A stretch of 64,000 bases of DNA from Marsupella aquatica (taxonomy: Eukaryota; Plantae; Marchantiophyta): the NCBI GenBank assembly GCA_973895155.1, contig OZ316898.1, positions 2,393,927 through 2,457,926 on the forward strand. Direction: 5' to 3'. The number at the start of each line of letters is the position of its first letter. Position 1 is the first letter of the stretch. Below the pieces are notes generated by a model. It had not been told where the DNA came from. It saw only the letters and a list, made by a program, of their open reading frames with translations, and searched no databases. The translations under genes and the position numbers were made by a program. Below, in pieces: positions 30,515 to 37,382 of the stretch.

Positions 30515-33159
30515 TCACCAGTAATCACCACAAGAACAAACCCCATCATTAAACCGGTGAAAGCGATTTGCATCCCTTGCTATAATCTCGCGTCCTGTCA
30601 CCTTAGAGATCAACTTGGTTGCTGTATGGCAATCTGAACACACCCGAAGGTTCTTAGTTACACGAATTGGTTTTTCCCGAGGTATGTGAATTAGTCCGTA
30701 AGCAATAGCCAACCTCTCACTGTGACAGCAAAGCGCTAGTTCTTTATCCTCATGCAACGCAAGCCGGGTATCTGGAATGTAGCCTTCAGCCTTCAGTTTT
30801 TCAGTCAATTTATTGAGCTCAGTATATATCGCCTTCGCTTCGGGGTGAGACGTATCGCCTACAACAAATTCATGGACCTTTTCATCAACTTCAATCCAGC
30901 TACGCCCTGGCTCCTTCCGAACACCTCTCTCTTGCATCATAGTGCGCACCAAAGACACGTTGTCCGACTTGCCAGCTGCAGCATAAATGTTGGAGAGAAG
31001 CACGTATGTAGAGGCCTTACTGGGTTCCAACTTGAAAAGCTTCTGAGCGACAAGTTCGCCCAACTCTACATTACAGTAAGTTCTGCAAGCCCCCAGCAAG
31101 GCTGTCCAAGTTATAAAATTTGGTTCAACTGCCATGTCCCTAATGAAGAGATGTGCTTCCTCCAAGTGTCCAGCCCGCCCAAGAAGATCCACCATGCAGG
31201 TACAATGCACAATGTCAGGCTCGATGCCATACTTTTGCGTCATAGCTGAAAAGAGTCTACGGCCCTCATTAACAAGGCCTCCATGACAACAGGCAGACAA
31301 CACCGCCACGAATGAAGTCCCGTCGGGCCTCACACCGTCTGCGGTCATTTCTCTAAAGAGTTCCAGGGCTTCATTCCCACATCCATGTTGTGCAAGTCCA
31401 CCGATCATTACATTCCATGTGACTACATCTCGTTTCTCCATTCTGTCAAAAACCAGTCGGGCGTCGTCTATACTGCCACTCTTTGCATACATGTGAATCA
31501 GTGAAATGCCCACACGCAAATCTGAATCCAGTCCGGCTTTACTAGCGTAGCCATGAACCTCCTTCACCCATTCCAAAGCCCCCGCACTTGCAGATGGGTT
31601 GAGAATACAAGTATAAGTGAATGCATCTGCTTCGACGCCGTCACGTCGCATTTGGACAAACAGTCGATATGCTTCATGCCCACGTCCATGTTGTGCAAGT
31701 CCACCAATCATTACAGTCCATGTGACAACATCGCGTTTCTCCATTCTGTCAAAAACCAGTTGGGCGTTATCTAAACTGCCACTCTGCGCATACATGTGAA
31801 CCAGTGCATTGCCCACACGCAAATCTGAATCCAGTCCCGCTTTGCTAGCATGGCCATGAACAGCCTTCACCCACTCCAAAGCCTCCGCACTTGCAGGTGC
31901 ATTCAGGATGCTCGCATAAGTGATTGCATTTGGTTCAAAGCCATCACGTCTCATTCGGAGAAAGAGTCGATATGCTTCATGCCCACGTCCATGAAGTGCA
32001 AGTCCACCGATCATTATGTTCCATGTGACAATATTTCGATTAGTCAAATTTTCAAAAACTAGCTTTGCCTCTGTGATGCACCCACACTTCGCATACATTT
32101 GAAGGAGGGCAGACCCTACACGCACATCTGATTCAAAACCGTCATGCCGAATACACATGTGAACTTCTTTTCCCCATTTCAGAGCTGATGGGCTGGCACA
32201 TGCCTTCAATATGGAGAGATATGTGACGTTATTAGGTCGCACACCTTCTTGGGGCATTGATTGGAAAAGTTGAAAGGCGGAGTCATTATCACCGTTCTTA
32301 GCATACGCTGCAATCATCGAGTTCCAATGAATAACCGTCCTCTCCTCGAGCTCTACAAAAACGCGGCGCGCATCCAACAATGCCCCGCATTTGATATACA
32401 CACTCAGGAGGGTGCCTGCCACATATGGAGTCTTATCCATTCCACTCTGGGTCATGTAGTAATGAACTTGCCGGGCCGCTGAAAGGTCCTTCTGTTGCAA
32501 GCACATTTGCAGAATTTTAATATAACTGGACGAGTCTGTAGTAATGCCTCGGCGTAGACGATTCTGCAAACCAGTAATTGCCTCAGTCGTGGTACCGGCG
32601 CTATGCATCTGCGAACTGCCATTCCCTTGTACAGTGTCACGAGACCAATCTCTGGTGCTATAACTGGCATGAGATTGCAATCTGCCTTCAGAAATCAAAT
32701 TGGGCCCTCCCTTCATCCATGCCGGACTTGACCGGCAATCCATCCGAAGTCCATTCCTGAGCACCTCCCCGGTTCTCAGGTCTTGTCTTCCTGAATTCTC
32801 GGTCACCTCGCCTTTAGAGATAGGTGAAGACTGCCCCTTCTCCTCTCTAGGTAGAGGTTCCGGCTGTCGAATCCCCAGCACATGGTTCGCTCTTATACTT
32901 CTAGTTGAATTTGCTTTTATGTCACCTACTCGTTTCGGTTCCACTTTCAAGCTGTCAATGTTCTGTTCACGTGACTCAGTGCTCTGTTGACGTGATTCCA
33001 TCCCACCAACGACTTCAAGTGAAGGGTTCCGGTTCTGCTCAATCATCGTAGCAGCTTCCCTCGAATTGGAAGCTCCTGCGCGAGTTTGAGGGAATTGTGT
33101 CTCCAGTTGTGCTACATTGTTGCCATGCACCTTTGCACCTTGAAAACCAGTGGAGGCAC
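30515..33159 (-). CDS. PLS-class PPR protein with E and DYW cytidine deaminase domains (organellar C-to-U RNA editing factor type); probably a terminal exon
   Basis: P-L-S triplets (e.g. RDVVTWTVMIGGLAQHGRGHEA), PG box KEPGRSWIEV, HSERLAIAYG, KNLRVCSDCH, DANRFHRF and terminal CSCGDYW. The first in-frame ATG is only at 33046, and there is a candidate acceptor at 33160/33159. Confidence 0.95.
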
Positions 33160-33675
33160 CTTGAAAAGCAGGCAAAGTGATCAGCGATGAAGATATACCG
33201 AGACAAAAATGGCACTGATAAAACCCCTCCTCTCTCAAATGCGTTGGAGTCTTTTGACCAGTCCAAAAGAATGACTGAACTCAGAAGACACAAACCCTAA
33301 TCGCCAACTTGTCCAACGAAATTGTGCATCCAAGATGGCAAAACAGAGTGCTATGACCGTCTTTTTTATGAATTCAGATCAGATTATTGTTTAGAGGAGG
33401 ATAGGATTTCATAATTGACTCGCGGGAGAGACTAGCTATTATGATAATTAAAGTATGGGGACGATTCTTAGACGCGATCCACAATTACAGTACACGCATT
33501 TATCAGCAGGTCACAGCAATGGTAACATTTACCAATTTCTTCGTAAATATTTTTTAGATTTTTATACAAGACCGTTAAAACTCCACGGAAGGGGGGGAAC
33601 AAGCAGAGCAAAAAGCCCGGGCAACGAAGCGAGAATGAAAGTCAGGACCATTGGCACATGACCAAGGAGCACTAC

Positions 33676-34755
33676 CTGGTGATGGTTGACTAGAAAGCTG
33701 TTGATAATTCCAATTTCGTTGAAACGAGTCCATACTTGCTACCTCAGTCTGGGACTGACTGCTGGATCCCCTGACCGTAAATTCATCATTAGACTGAACG
33801 AAGGGTTGCCTCCGACCACTGGAGTGTTCGACAAAACATAAGTCCCTCACGACAACCTGACCATCCAAAGCAATAAGATAATGATGGGAGCGAAATGAAA
33901 CGCGAGCTGATATAAGAGAATTTTCTTTTGGCAGCTCTATGATTGGAATGAAAGACATCAAACAAATCAATCATCAGTAGTCGGCGAGAGGACCACGGTA
34001 CCTTGACAATAGTCGACCTAACGTCGTCTTTTACCCTCTCATCTACCACAATCTTTCCCGCGACGAGAATTAGCTCTCCTTTCGCCACATGATGAGCAGC
34101 AATTTCAGCAAGGTCGTCACAAATCTCTAACGTAAACCTGAATCCAGGAAATTACAACCAACGTTAAACGGGCCTAACCCGCATAATCGAAGCGAGAATT
34201 ACTTTGAAGAACCATTTCTCATGGCTCGACTACCAAACTTCACTTTGTAATGCTTGAGATTCTACTAGCACACACATACCAGCTCGGATCCCCGGTTCTT
34301 TGCGATCCCTCATGCACCGCGAGAGTAGTAGTGGCCAAAACCTTGCCGGAATCCAAGTACTTGATCTCAATGTCCCTTCCGACACGGCCCATCAGCTGCA
34401 CACCATTGGCCAAGTCCTTCTCCCACGGTATGACCGGAGGTCGAGGAAACGGGCCTTTCTCCTGCTGCTGCTGCTGCTGCGACGGCCCGCCATTCTGCTC
34501 GTACGCTTCCGCAACCATTCTGTTCGGCCTCCTTCCGTCTCCCTCTTGATAGTATGTCCTCCTGGAAGCCACAGGCCTCACATTGGACAGAGCCCACCGA
34601 GGGGGAATCCGTTGTTCCTCAGTGAGCCCTCTCCAGGACAAATGAGAACAGGCAGAACTCGACGCCCATTTGCTGCTGAGGGGTTTGAGGCCTGCAGAGA
34701 TGGCAGCAGAGGAGACGACTCCCCCTCTCTGAGTGGGTGCCAATCCTGCCGCCAT
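33676..34755 (-). CDS. Organelle-targeted single-stranded DNA-binding (SSB/OSB-like OB-fold) coding exons
   Basis: Exons 34755-34280, 34137-34002 and 33856-33676 (or read-through to the stop at 33575). An Ala/Ser/Arg-rich transit-peptide-like N-terminus is followed by RPPVIPWEKDLANGVQLMGRVGRDIEIKYLDSGKVLATTTLAV...SWFTLEICDDLAEIAAHHVAKGELILVAGKI...VKVVVRDLCFVE. Confidence 0.85.
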
Positions 34756-37382
34756 GGATTCGTGAGGCAGCAGCATAACTGAGCTGTGGCAGCTTCAGAT
34801 GAGATTGTTGGGCTCCTCCCCAAACGGATTACTCACTTCGAGGAATGCGATTACTTTGTACATGACTGTGTTGCCTCAAATTTTTATGCAAAAAATGCGT
34901 CAGACAGGAAAAGATGGACCGCGAGATTTGAAGAAATGCTTGGATGGACCAGAGGAACCGCGTCAGAAAATTGTTTCTGGCTCCGATCACATGTTTTACA
35001 ATTCTGTTCAAAAACTGACCTGCACAATCGTTCTGACCGATAGAAGCTGGTACTCTGTTAGAATCAACCGGAAATCAGTCATTGATTTCGTGTGCACCGG
35101 GAGAGTTTTCATTGTAGCTTGTTGTGTTGTGATGGTTCCCACGATAATTGTCGATCTTCCTGCTTGATCCGCATCTTGAAGAGTGTTTTCATCTGGACGT
35201 TCACAGTTCCACTGCTCCGATTGAATCGAAAGCTGTGTTTGCAATTGAATTAGAACAAATGCTTCTTGCCCCAATTGAGCCCGCAACAACATCGCAAGAA
35301 CCAGAACCCGAACATCAATAAACTGACCATTGAATGAGGGACCCGACTGTGCGAATGCAATCGAGGCCGCAGAAGGAGACACCAGCGCACTCAACCACAA
35401 GAAATCCAGGCCCACTAATTTTGCTCAAAGTAAGCCAGTATGCTTCAGACATGGGGAGAGGCAAGACATGGGGAGAGGCAAGAGCTATTAGGGCTGCTCA
35501 AACCATGGCTGTCACTGGTTACGAGTTGGCCGTAAGGACTGAGTTATTACGAGAGCCATAAAAGTACGAGAGCCATAAAAGTTGCCGAAGGCCAAAATCA
35601 ACTTCGGTAAGAAAGTGTCTGGGCAGCTGACCAAAAGAGTAACTTTAACTTTGAATCTGCGTTATCATAACATAGAGTCATCCAGGGACAGATAAGACAT
35701 GTCAATCAGAAAAGACATGCCAATCACTGTGTATTAATAGAACTCTATTGTAACCCCTTGTTGAGATAATAGGCTTGGGTCTGTCCGACAAGGACGGGCC
35801 AAAAGCACTTACTTTGAGCAGGAGTACCGATAACTCTTCCCTTATGGCACTGGTCAATGTGTAGAGCGTGTCAAAGTTCTACTATAACACTTTGGTTACG
35901 GCTTTATTTTTTTTGGATGTGCCACCTTTATGGAGTACATACTTTGGTAACTCATAACTATTATGTCCTGGCAATAAATGTGTTTTATGTCCTGAGCAGT
36001 AACTTAGGTACAACTGTACTTTTACACTCCCTAATGGCTTGTAAAGTCTGGTCATAAGGTGTTTTATGGGCACAACTAGTGTCTTATAACTTTTCCTTAT
36101 GGCCTTACTTTGAGGCACCTAATAAGGGCATATACATACACAGCAGCCTCTGAAAGCACAAGCCGCAAGCCAAAAGAACGCCTAAAGCTACCTTGAAAGA
36201 CCTGTTCATTCGGGTTCAGCCATATCATCCACAGAATCTGGTAGACCAGGAAAACCCACACTCCATGGAGGTTGCCCGACCATCTCACCCACCTCCATTC
36301 TTCCTCATCCAACCAAAGCTTGCATGTCACTTCGGAGCCCAAACAAAGCAATTCAGAGACAAGTCTGTTATTCCATGTAACTCTGCTTCAAACAGACGGG
36401 CAAGCAAGACAACATTCAAAGTAGGACAAGGGCAAGGGGCAGGGAGTAGGATCACTCCCTCTGACACCCCCAGGGGCCCAAATATACATAATGCCAAGGT
36501 GTACACAGTATTCTAAATATATGAGTTTTGACTTTAGAGCCAAAGGGAATGCATTGTACTGTCACTTTACAGGGGCAGAGGGTGTCCCTAGAGTTTAACA
36601 GGGAGTGTGAAGGAAAATCATACTCCCTACTGCCGTATTTGTACACTCCTCACTCCCTGGAAAATCTGTGATCTTATTGGCTCAAACCTGCTGACACACA
36701 TGTGCACTCCCTCGAGTGGAACCTAGCCCCATGGAACCTAGCCCTTAGCCCTCATTCCACTCCCTCGAGCTCCAGAGCATAAGCATCCTAGAATCAGGCA
36801 AAGATAAACTCCAAAGGTGTCTGTGAAATATCAGGAGACACAATTTTCCTGTGGGCCAAACTGCTAAGAAGACCCACCCAACCAATTATTCCCACCAGGG
36901 AACTCAACTAAAGAATTATAACTCCAGAGGGCATTAGCAAGCTCTGTCTATGCTCAACATCAGACAAATAAATATATGCCAAAGTGCCGAAAGGCAAAAA
37001 AGCAAAAATGCCAAACGGGAGACAGGATTGCAAAGACAAAGCCACCCAATAAAGGGGAGGCAAGAAGAAGGGGGGAGGGCCCCAAACAGACCTAAATGGT
37101 CCACCAAGGCAAGGAGTAGCCCACCACAACCAAGCCATCAGGTGGCATTGCCCCTTTTTGCCTGGAGTCCAATCTAGCACACCCCAAGCATCCAACTACC
37201 ACACCCCTGGATCAAGCTGAGCCAAAGAGGGTTGTGGTTCAGGCGAGGCCATGGAGCAACTGTTCCTTTGCTCCCACTCAACTTACATCTCTATTCCCTT
37301 GGAGTCTTTCCCTTGTTTCCTCCCCTTGTTTGGTCTCTTGCCTTTGAGATCTTGTCTCCCTCTCCTAAGTTTTTTGTTCTTT

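Follow-up and report, generated by a model that had tools for sequence, protein, structure and literature searches.

In a 64,000-nucleotide stretch of DNA from the liverwort Marsupella aquatica (contig OZ316898.1, positions 2,393,927 to 2,457,926; called the window below, with positions counted from its first letter), three exons resembling a protein that binds single-stranded DNA (ssDNA) stand upstream of a long open frame for a PPR protein that ends in a DYW deaminase domain. We propose, with a probability of roughly one half, that these exons, which belong to a gene of the OSB family, and the PPR-DYW frame are parts of one chimeric gene and are spliced together in frame. What leads us to favour this reading is that the two halves are incomplete in complementary ways, since the OSB half is without its end and the PPR half without its beginning. 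The fusion is made more plausible by a conserved phase-1 splice donor at the end of the OSB half, by the absence of the last OSB exons on one side and of the PPR start codon and presequence on the other, and by the capture of foreign 5′ ends in paralogous PPR-DYW genes. Both halves are moreover intact, including the catalytic motifs of the DYW domain. The anatomy of the locus, the homologies of its parts and the compatibility of their phases can be read directly from the DNA, and it is from them that we infer the splice, its expression and the targeting of its product.

Anatomy of the locus

All features of the locus lie on the minus strand. OSB exon 1 (34280-34755, 476 nt) holds the start codon, a presequence rich in Ser, Ala and Arg and the first third of the OB fold, and it ends in phase 2; a second in-frame ATG is available at 34776. 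Exon 2 (34002-34137, 136 nt) encodes the middle of the OB fold and ends in phase 0, and exon 3 (33676-33856, 181 nt) encodes the end of the fold and a Ser/Gln-rich linker, ending in phase 1 at the donor CAG/GTAGTG. All three exons have GT-AG borders. The codon split after exon 1 is TGG, for a Trp that is conserved in OSB homologs, and a check of the frames exon by exon found no in-frame stop in any of them. Downstream, the PLS-E-E+-DYW open frame (30515-33238) extends over 907 codons, with its first ATG at 33046.

The candidate intron 3 of the fusion (33160-33675, 516 nt) has a CTGAT 24 nt before its terminal AAG and a pyrimidine-rich tract. Joining the donor at 33676 to the candidate acceptor at 33159 restores a split GGT codon (Gly) and keeps the frame, such that the lengths add up arithmetically (476 + 136 + 181 + 2645 = 3438 nt) to a product of 1145 aa. 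Recomputation gave the same exon coordinates, lengths (476, 136, 181 and 2645 nt), GT-AG borders and open frames as an earlier, preliminary description of this DNA, and it bore out the central point of that description, namely that with phases 2, 0 and 1 the phase-1 donor at 33676 fits a phase-1 PPR exon start at 33159, so that one open frame of 1145 aa is possible.

The OSB-like exons

The preliminary description had taken the upstream gene for an SSB, which is right as far as the fold is concerned: Pfam SSB matches are colinear along the gene, with exon 1 covering profile positions 2-50 and exon 2 positions 53-84. The gene does not look like a bacterial-type SSB (PF00436), since its single exons, at 24.7 and 17.3 bits, stay below the Pfam cut-off of 26, and an acidic C-terminal tail is absent. 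Its nearest relatives are OSBs and not SSB1-type proteins. On homology, it is a member of the OSB family and not a generic SSB, because every homolog that is named or carries a diagnostic motif is an OSB in which the PDF motif is canonical. With exon 1 as query, phmmer returned 93 OSB-type matches from the whole library (best E 2.4e-22), and every match that is long enough contains the canonical PDF motif, WWDNR followed by PDFKHK; a word-indexed search with the same exon returned no match. Two proteins of Riccia fluitans (KAL2653607 and KAL2634594) are the best full-length OSB matches. Exon 2 is 55-71% identical to OSB homologs, and exon 3 aligns with residues 221-290 of a Riccia OSB. All invariant columns of the OB-fold alignment are kept, and the aromatic residue of the EFW position in exon 2 is a Cys. 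That the OB fold is well conserved may be due either to the event being recent or to a function having been retained. As for composition, the first 40 residues have a net charge of +3, contain no acidic residue and are rich in Ser and Ala.

For comparison of the gene structures, one Riccia OSB protein was mapped onto its own locus, where it is encoded by five exons. Its exon 1 ends in phase 2 like the 476-nt exon 1 of the window, its exon 2 has the same length of 136 nt and ends likewise in phase 0, and its exon 3 has a phase-1 end inside a Gly codon, as has the 181-nt exon 3 of the window. Given this agreement in exon sizes and phases, the donor at 33676 is the inherited, conserved donor of OSB intron 3. 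Exons 4 and 5 of the Riccia gene, which encode the PDF motif and are divided by a phase-0 intron, have no counterpart here: tblastn with all 93 OSB proteins found canonical PDF exons nowhere in the 64-kb window. Eight metagenome-derived OSB loci (five of them distinct, and three of them transcripts) have a canonical appearance, PDF exons being matched in every contig that is long enough to reach them, and in none of the eight is the OSB gene followed by a PPR gene. The closest relatives of exons 1 and 2, with 57-71% identity, are a Logan contig from run SRR33208280 (L005) and a JGI metagenome contig that holds P0123; both represent bryophyte DNA and end before the region past exon 2 or 3.

The PPR-DYW frame and its linker

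The downstream frame gives strong Pfam matches to PPR_2 (1.8e-80), E_motif (2e-20), Eplus_motif (6.6e-08) and DYW_deaminase (4.5e-35). The PLS-type PPR array lies at 31079-32551 and is followed at 30518-31078 by the E motif (residues 721-783), the E+ motif (788-815) and the DYW deaminase domain (819-907), whose translation contains both zinc-binding signatures, HxE (as HSE) and CxxCH (as CSDCH), as well as the terminal DYW. The frame thus has the features of a PLS-class, DYW-type PPR editing factor, for which editing activity and organellar import are predicted. Its closest named relatives are PPR-DYW proteins of Calypogeia fissa, at 65-73% identity.

The array includes three tandem units of 303 nt (31368-32273), each corresponding to one PLS triplet, with identities of 86% and 64%. 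The 86% identity of neighbouring units points to a recent internal duplication that altered the length of the array. The possibility that the PPR gene arrived by retroposition or on a transposon was rejected, as poly(A) tract, flanking direct repeats and terminal inverted repeats are all absent.

The region ahead of the array had been described as a low-complexity linker of about 300 aa. The linker is there, yet it is not anonymous. A search with the linker only gave a single match, the 1353-aa protein P0215 of Calypogeia, which carries DNA_pol_A and 3′-5′ exonuclease domains and is the organellar DNA polymerase. Residues 28-167 of the open frame (32738-33157) are 56% identical to residues 406-540 of P0215 (E 3e-39), which belong to the N-terminal disordered region of the polymerase and are encoded within a single exon of 1576 nt in its gene (locus L015). 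Directly after this segment, the stretch at 32651-32737 falls, in a family profile alignment, at the position where paralogs carry the decayed second half of a PDF motif (the ...PAW.K... part). As a family, the N-termini of liverwort PPR proteins match the PDF motifs of OSBs and of moss proteins in a profile-profile comparison (hhalign probability 96.5%, E 7e-10). The signal is carried by the paralogs (E 3e-5 for P0115 and 2.6e-3 for P0059), while the window by itself reaches an E of 8.5, and a PDF relic in the linker of the window would follow from the family alignment. The linker is thus a mosaic, composed of a polymerase-derived piece and then a stretch at the position of the paralogs' decayed PDF motif. 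Homology between the start of the PPR exon and OSB exon 4 was considered as well and was rejected as evidence, the profile comparison being not significant (E 0.23).

Both the paralogs and the polymerase start to resemble the window's PPR copy at 33160-33157, and upstream of 33160 there is no homology to the two paralog loci tested. In the paralogs P0117 and P0046 the coding sequence extends further upstream, where it provides a Met and an N-terminus of basic character. The copy in the window is 5′-shortened, having lost the start codon and the presequence of its paralogs. Reading from the ATG at 33046 would yield an acidic N-terminus, with a net charge of -1 and 7 acidic residues in the first 40, and two short out-of-frame ATGs precede this codon between 33130 and 33046. 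Hence the PPR frame is, as had been noted before, without a convincing start codon and transit peptide of its own. The frame between 33159 and 33046 is itself open, and differs from the relatives only by substitutions and in-frame indels. We also considered whether the homology boundary at 33160 is an inherited exon edge and rejected this, since the polymerase segment sits inside one large exon and the paralogs read through.

Captured 5′ ends in related PPR-DYW genes

Related genes offer precedents for the replacement of a 5′ end. Four Calypogeia PPR-DYW paralogs carry N-terminal pieces of the polymerase of differing extent: residues 1-254 in P0105 (E 3e-75), exon 1 together with residues 366-553 in P0046, the part from residue 372 onward in P0117, and residues 444-519 in P0102. 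The N-terminal region of the polymerase, exon 1 and transit peptide included, was thus copied onto several PPR-DYW genes, and these copies were later trimmed unequally.

Many Calypogeia paralogs start with the N-terminus of an LHCB precursor; residues 3-102 of P0119, for instance, match residues 1-108 of LHCII (E 1.3e-14). This group comprises P0119, P0024, P0116, P0114, P0006, P0023 and P0102 of Calypogeia fissa as well as the locus L001:10001-11180, and the N-termini consist of the transit peptide followed by some 70 residues of the mature protein in a decayed state. The annotation of P0102 joins three LHCB-like exons to a PPR body that still holds a polymerase fragment, which makes it a close counterpart of the fusion proposed for the window.

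A third source is the OSB family itself. A full PDF motif precedes the PPR array in four PPR-DYW proteins of Ceratodon (E 1e-26 to 1e-31) and in one JGI protein (6.7e-14). In these moss proteins (P0008, P0029, P0031 and P0071 of Ceratodon purpureus, and P0113), the motif stands between the presequence and the array. In the one Ceratodon gene that was mapped (L006:10001-11065), a phase-1 intron lies before the PDF motif and divides a Gly codon, and a phase-0 intron interrupts the motif at the OSB position. Because the OSB intron positions are kept, the PDF motif was captured at the DNA level. In the literature searched we found no description of a PDF motif or an OSB linked with PPR proteins, and a review on the PPR proteins of Physcomitrium names RRM, LAGLIDADG, SMR, NYN, CBS and SAP as extra domains, with the PDF motif not among them (PMC9459714). 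Judged from their sequences, these genes show a bryophyte PPR-DYW clade that took up 5′ modules repeatedly, from LHCB genes, from an organellar DNA polymerase gene, and, introns included, from the PDF motif of OSB genes.

The candidate junction and alternative explanations

The PPR frame offers three candidate acceptors in phase with the OSB donor, an AAG at 33159, a second AAG at 33138, and a canonical CAG/G at 33075. The first two had been put forward in the preliminary description, and their phase, the CTGAT and the pyrimidine tract are as reported there. Their character as splice sites is more doubtful. The two best-placed acceptors end in AAG, and AAG acceptors are uncommon. Moreover, the acceptor-like TTTTCAAG followed by GT corresponds to ordinary codons for GFQG in paralogs that have no intron, and it occurs twice in the window through a duplication with a spacing of 21 nt (a 16-nt repeat at 33135-33171, each copy of which ends in the acceptor-like CAAG/GT). 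Since the motif is coding in intron-less paralogs and duplicated here, its resemblance to a splice site is partly fortuitous.

Further observations weigh against a splice at this place. Exon 3 reads on in frame through 98 nt of GC-rich, exon-like sequence to a stop of its own (33 codons and a stop at 33577-33575; read-through 33575-33675), and AT-rich sequence with a TATAAA at 33566 follows this stop. The GC content of the read-through tail is 0.54, as compared to about 0.41 in introns 1 and 2 and 0.38 in the rest of the spacer. Three paralogs share the Met at 33046, and the models of some paralogs begin still further downstream, such that the PPR protein may be translated on its own. The preliminary description had suggested looking for SSB, PPR and DYW domains in one protein, and this search speaks against the fusion: no protein with an OB fold and PPRs was found among the 93 OSB-type matches (the longest of which has 559 aa) or the top 120 PPR matches, an absence that is weak evidence, since a representative library may hide a fusion protein inside a PPR cluster. 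Finally, OB exons are absent from the 10 kb upstream of the related PPR loci L001, L002 and L006, and from the 200 upstream nt covered for L003.

The tail behind exon 3 would either open intron 3 or form the true C-terminus of a shortened OSB protein. It encodes a GPDF at 33646, the sole PDF tripeptide of the region, and further on (within 33578-33675) an SPPSV, with a spacing roughly as in the PDF...NPPWV of OSBs. The tail may be what is left of the lost PDF exons after their collapse, but the statistics are marginal: its match to the PDF profile has 0.7 bits and is reached by 2.4% of shuffled sequences and 4.6% of control peptides. The earlier statement that no PDF motif is visible after the OB fold thus holds for the canonical PDF exons, and is to be qualified by this marginal GPDF.

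Many of these observations are equally those that one would expect of two separate transcription units, a quite possible alternative, to which we give less credence than to the fusion. Here, a shortened OSB-like gene or gene fragment would stop at 33575, an independent PPR-DYW gene would be driven by a promoter in the 0.4-kb spacer and translated from the ATG at 33046 or a later Met, and the match in phase would be coincidental. The stop at the end of an exon-like, GC-rich tail, the AT-rich sequence with TATAAA behind it and the GPDF as a possibly decayed PDF motif would all suit an OSB-like gene that ends on its own, and the spacer contains, besides a TATA-like TATATC, a telo-box (AAACCCTAA, plus strand, 33292-33300). 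The preliminary description had seen the telo-box, at the same place, as a possible mark of a PPR promoter; with 2 telo-boxes found in the window against 0.7 expected, its presence is not significant. Two units are also favoured by the conservation of Met 33046 in paralogs, by the uncommon AAG acceptors, by the intron-less P0117, a stand-alone gene which is likewise cut within its polymerase-derived part, and by P0057 and P0111, which start near the PPR array. Several points speak against two units. An OSB without its PDF motif lacks the main ssDNA-binding element of the family (PMC6963530), while the acidic N-terminus from ATG 33046 is poorly suited to organelle import and is preceded by the two out-of-frame upstream ATGs. 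In addition, the frame upstream of this ATG is still open and is conserved as coding in relatives, and the two genes are incomplete in complementary ways.

It is unlikely that the locus is a relic of rearrangement, in which a partial OSB duplicate, a 5′-shortened PPR duplicate or both persist as unexpressed fragments of too recent an origin to have decayed: both parts are indeed partial copies of larger genes, the PPR family is very large and recombines freely, and the 86% identity of adjacent PLS triplets betrays recent change, but a 907-codon frame with its catalytic motifs, the OSB splice sites and the invariant OB residues would hardly have stayed intact without selection unless the event was very recent, and the relatives are all too distant to date it.

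Origin and function of the proposed chimeric gene

If the two parts form a single gene, the locus would have arisen by successive replacement of the 5′ end of a liverwort PPR-DYW editing-factor gene. The N-terminus of the PPR subfamily was captured from the organellar DNA polymerase gene, and in the copy of the window all that precedes polymerase residue 406 is gone, start codon and presequence included. This copy now lies 0.4-0.5 kb downstream of OSB exons 1-3, which encode presequence and OB fold, in an OSB gene that is here without its two PDF-motif exons. The OSB intron-3 donor at 33676 could be joined in frame to acceptor 33159, 33138 or 33075, giving a product of about 1145 aa in which a presequence and an OB fold are followed by a disordered linker, the PLS array and the E and DYW domains. 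Most likely, the OSB part would supply promoter, start codon and organellar targeting signal, and the product would act as an ordinary site-specific C-to-U RNA editor.

With respect to function, the preliminary description had left two options for the fusion, a borrowed promoter and targeting signal or the tethering of a cytidine deaminase to ssDNA. The first has precedents in the family and, by analogy to the LHCB and polymerase pieces of the paralogs, is the better reading. As for the second, ssDNA is bound by the PDF motif, an ability that OSB1's OB fold seems to have lost (PMC6963530). Tethering is thus unlikely here, because the PDF motif is missing, it is the OB fold that is kept, and one aromatic position of this fold is a Cys. 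We consider it improbable that the OB fold has a function of its own in a 1145-aa editor, be it in oligomerisation or in holding the protein on nucleoid ssDNA or R-loops and so coupling editing to transcription or DNA metabolism. If this were true, bryophyte editing factors would repeatedly make working use of pieces taken from OSBs, here of the OB fold and in mosses of the PDF motif. The captured modules also raise the testable question of whether the PDF motif has any role in the editing factors of mosses.

Should the splice be real, we would here see a DYW editing factor in the course of exchanging its targeting end, at least its second such exchange, and this editor would carry an OB fold, so far intact, that comes from a protein of DNA maintenance. 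This architecture was absent from the proteins and the literature searched, and the preliminary description, too, knew of no account of it. Whether or not the splice is real, the capture of 5′ modules offers a tangible way for a family of editors that duplicates rapidly to regain promoters and import signals.

Comparison with known systems

Compared with OSB proteins (Arabidopsis OSB1-4 and Riccia KAL2653607 and KAL2634594), the upstream part of the window is alike in presequence and OB fold, and identical in the length of exon 2 and in the phases of introns 1-3. It differs in that the OSB genes have two PDF exons, which are absent here, and in the Cys at the EFW aromatic position.

With DYW-type editing factors such as Physcomitrium PPR56 and PPR65 or the synthetic PPR-DYW protein of PDB 9kfx, the window shares the PLS array, the E and E+ motifs and a DYW deaminase domain with HxE and CxxCH signatures. 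Unlike these, it has at the ancestral position neither a start codon nor a presequence of its own, and its N-terminal region appears to be a mosaic derived from polymerase and PDF sequences.

The PDF-carrying PPR-DYW proteins of the moss Ceratodon (KC19_1G285400, M758_12G068300, M758_7G001800 and M758_8G001900) resemble the proposed fusion in having an OSB-derived part ahead of the array and, before that part, a Gly codon split by a phase-1 intron. They carry the PDF motif and no OB fold, whereas the window would have the OB fold and at most a trace of the PDF motif.

In the Calypogeia proteins P0119, P0024, P0105, P0046 and P0102, a PPR-DYW body is headed by the 5′ end of a different gene whose product is targeted to organelles, and some of the models make this connection through introns. 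In these, the captured part of the mature protein has decayed, whereas in the window, whose junction is predicted, the OB fold is well conserved.

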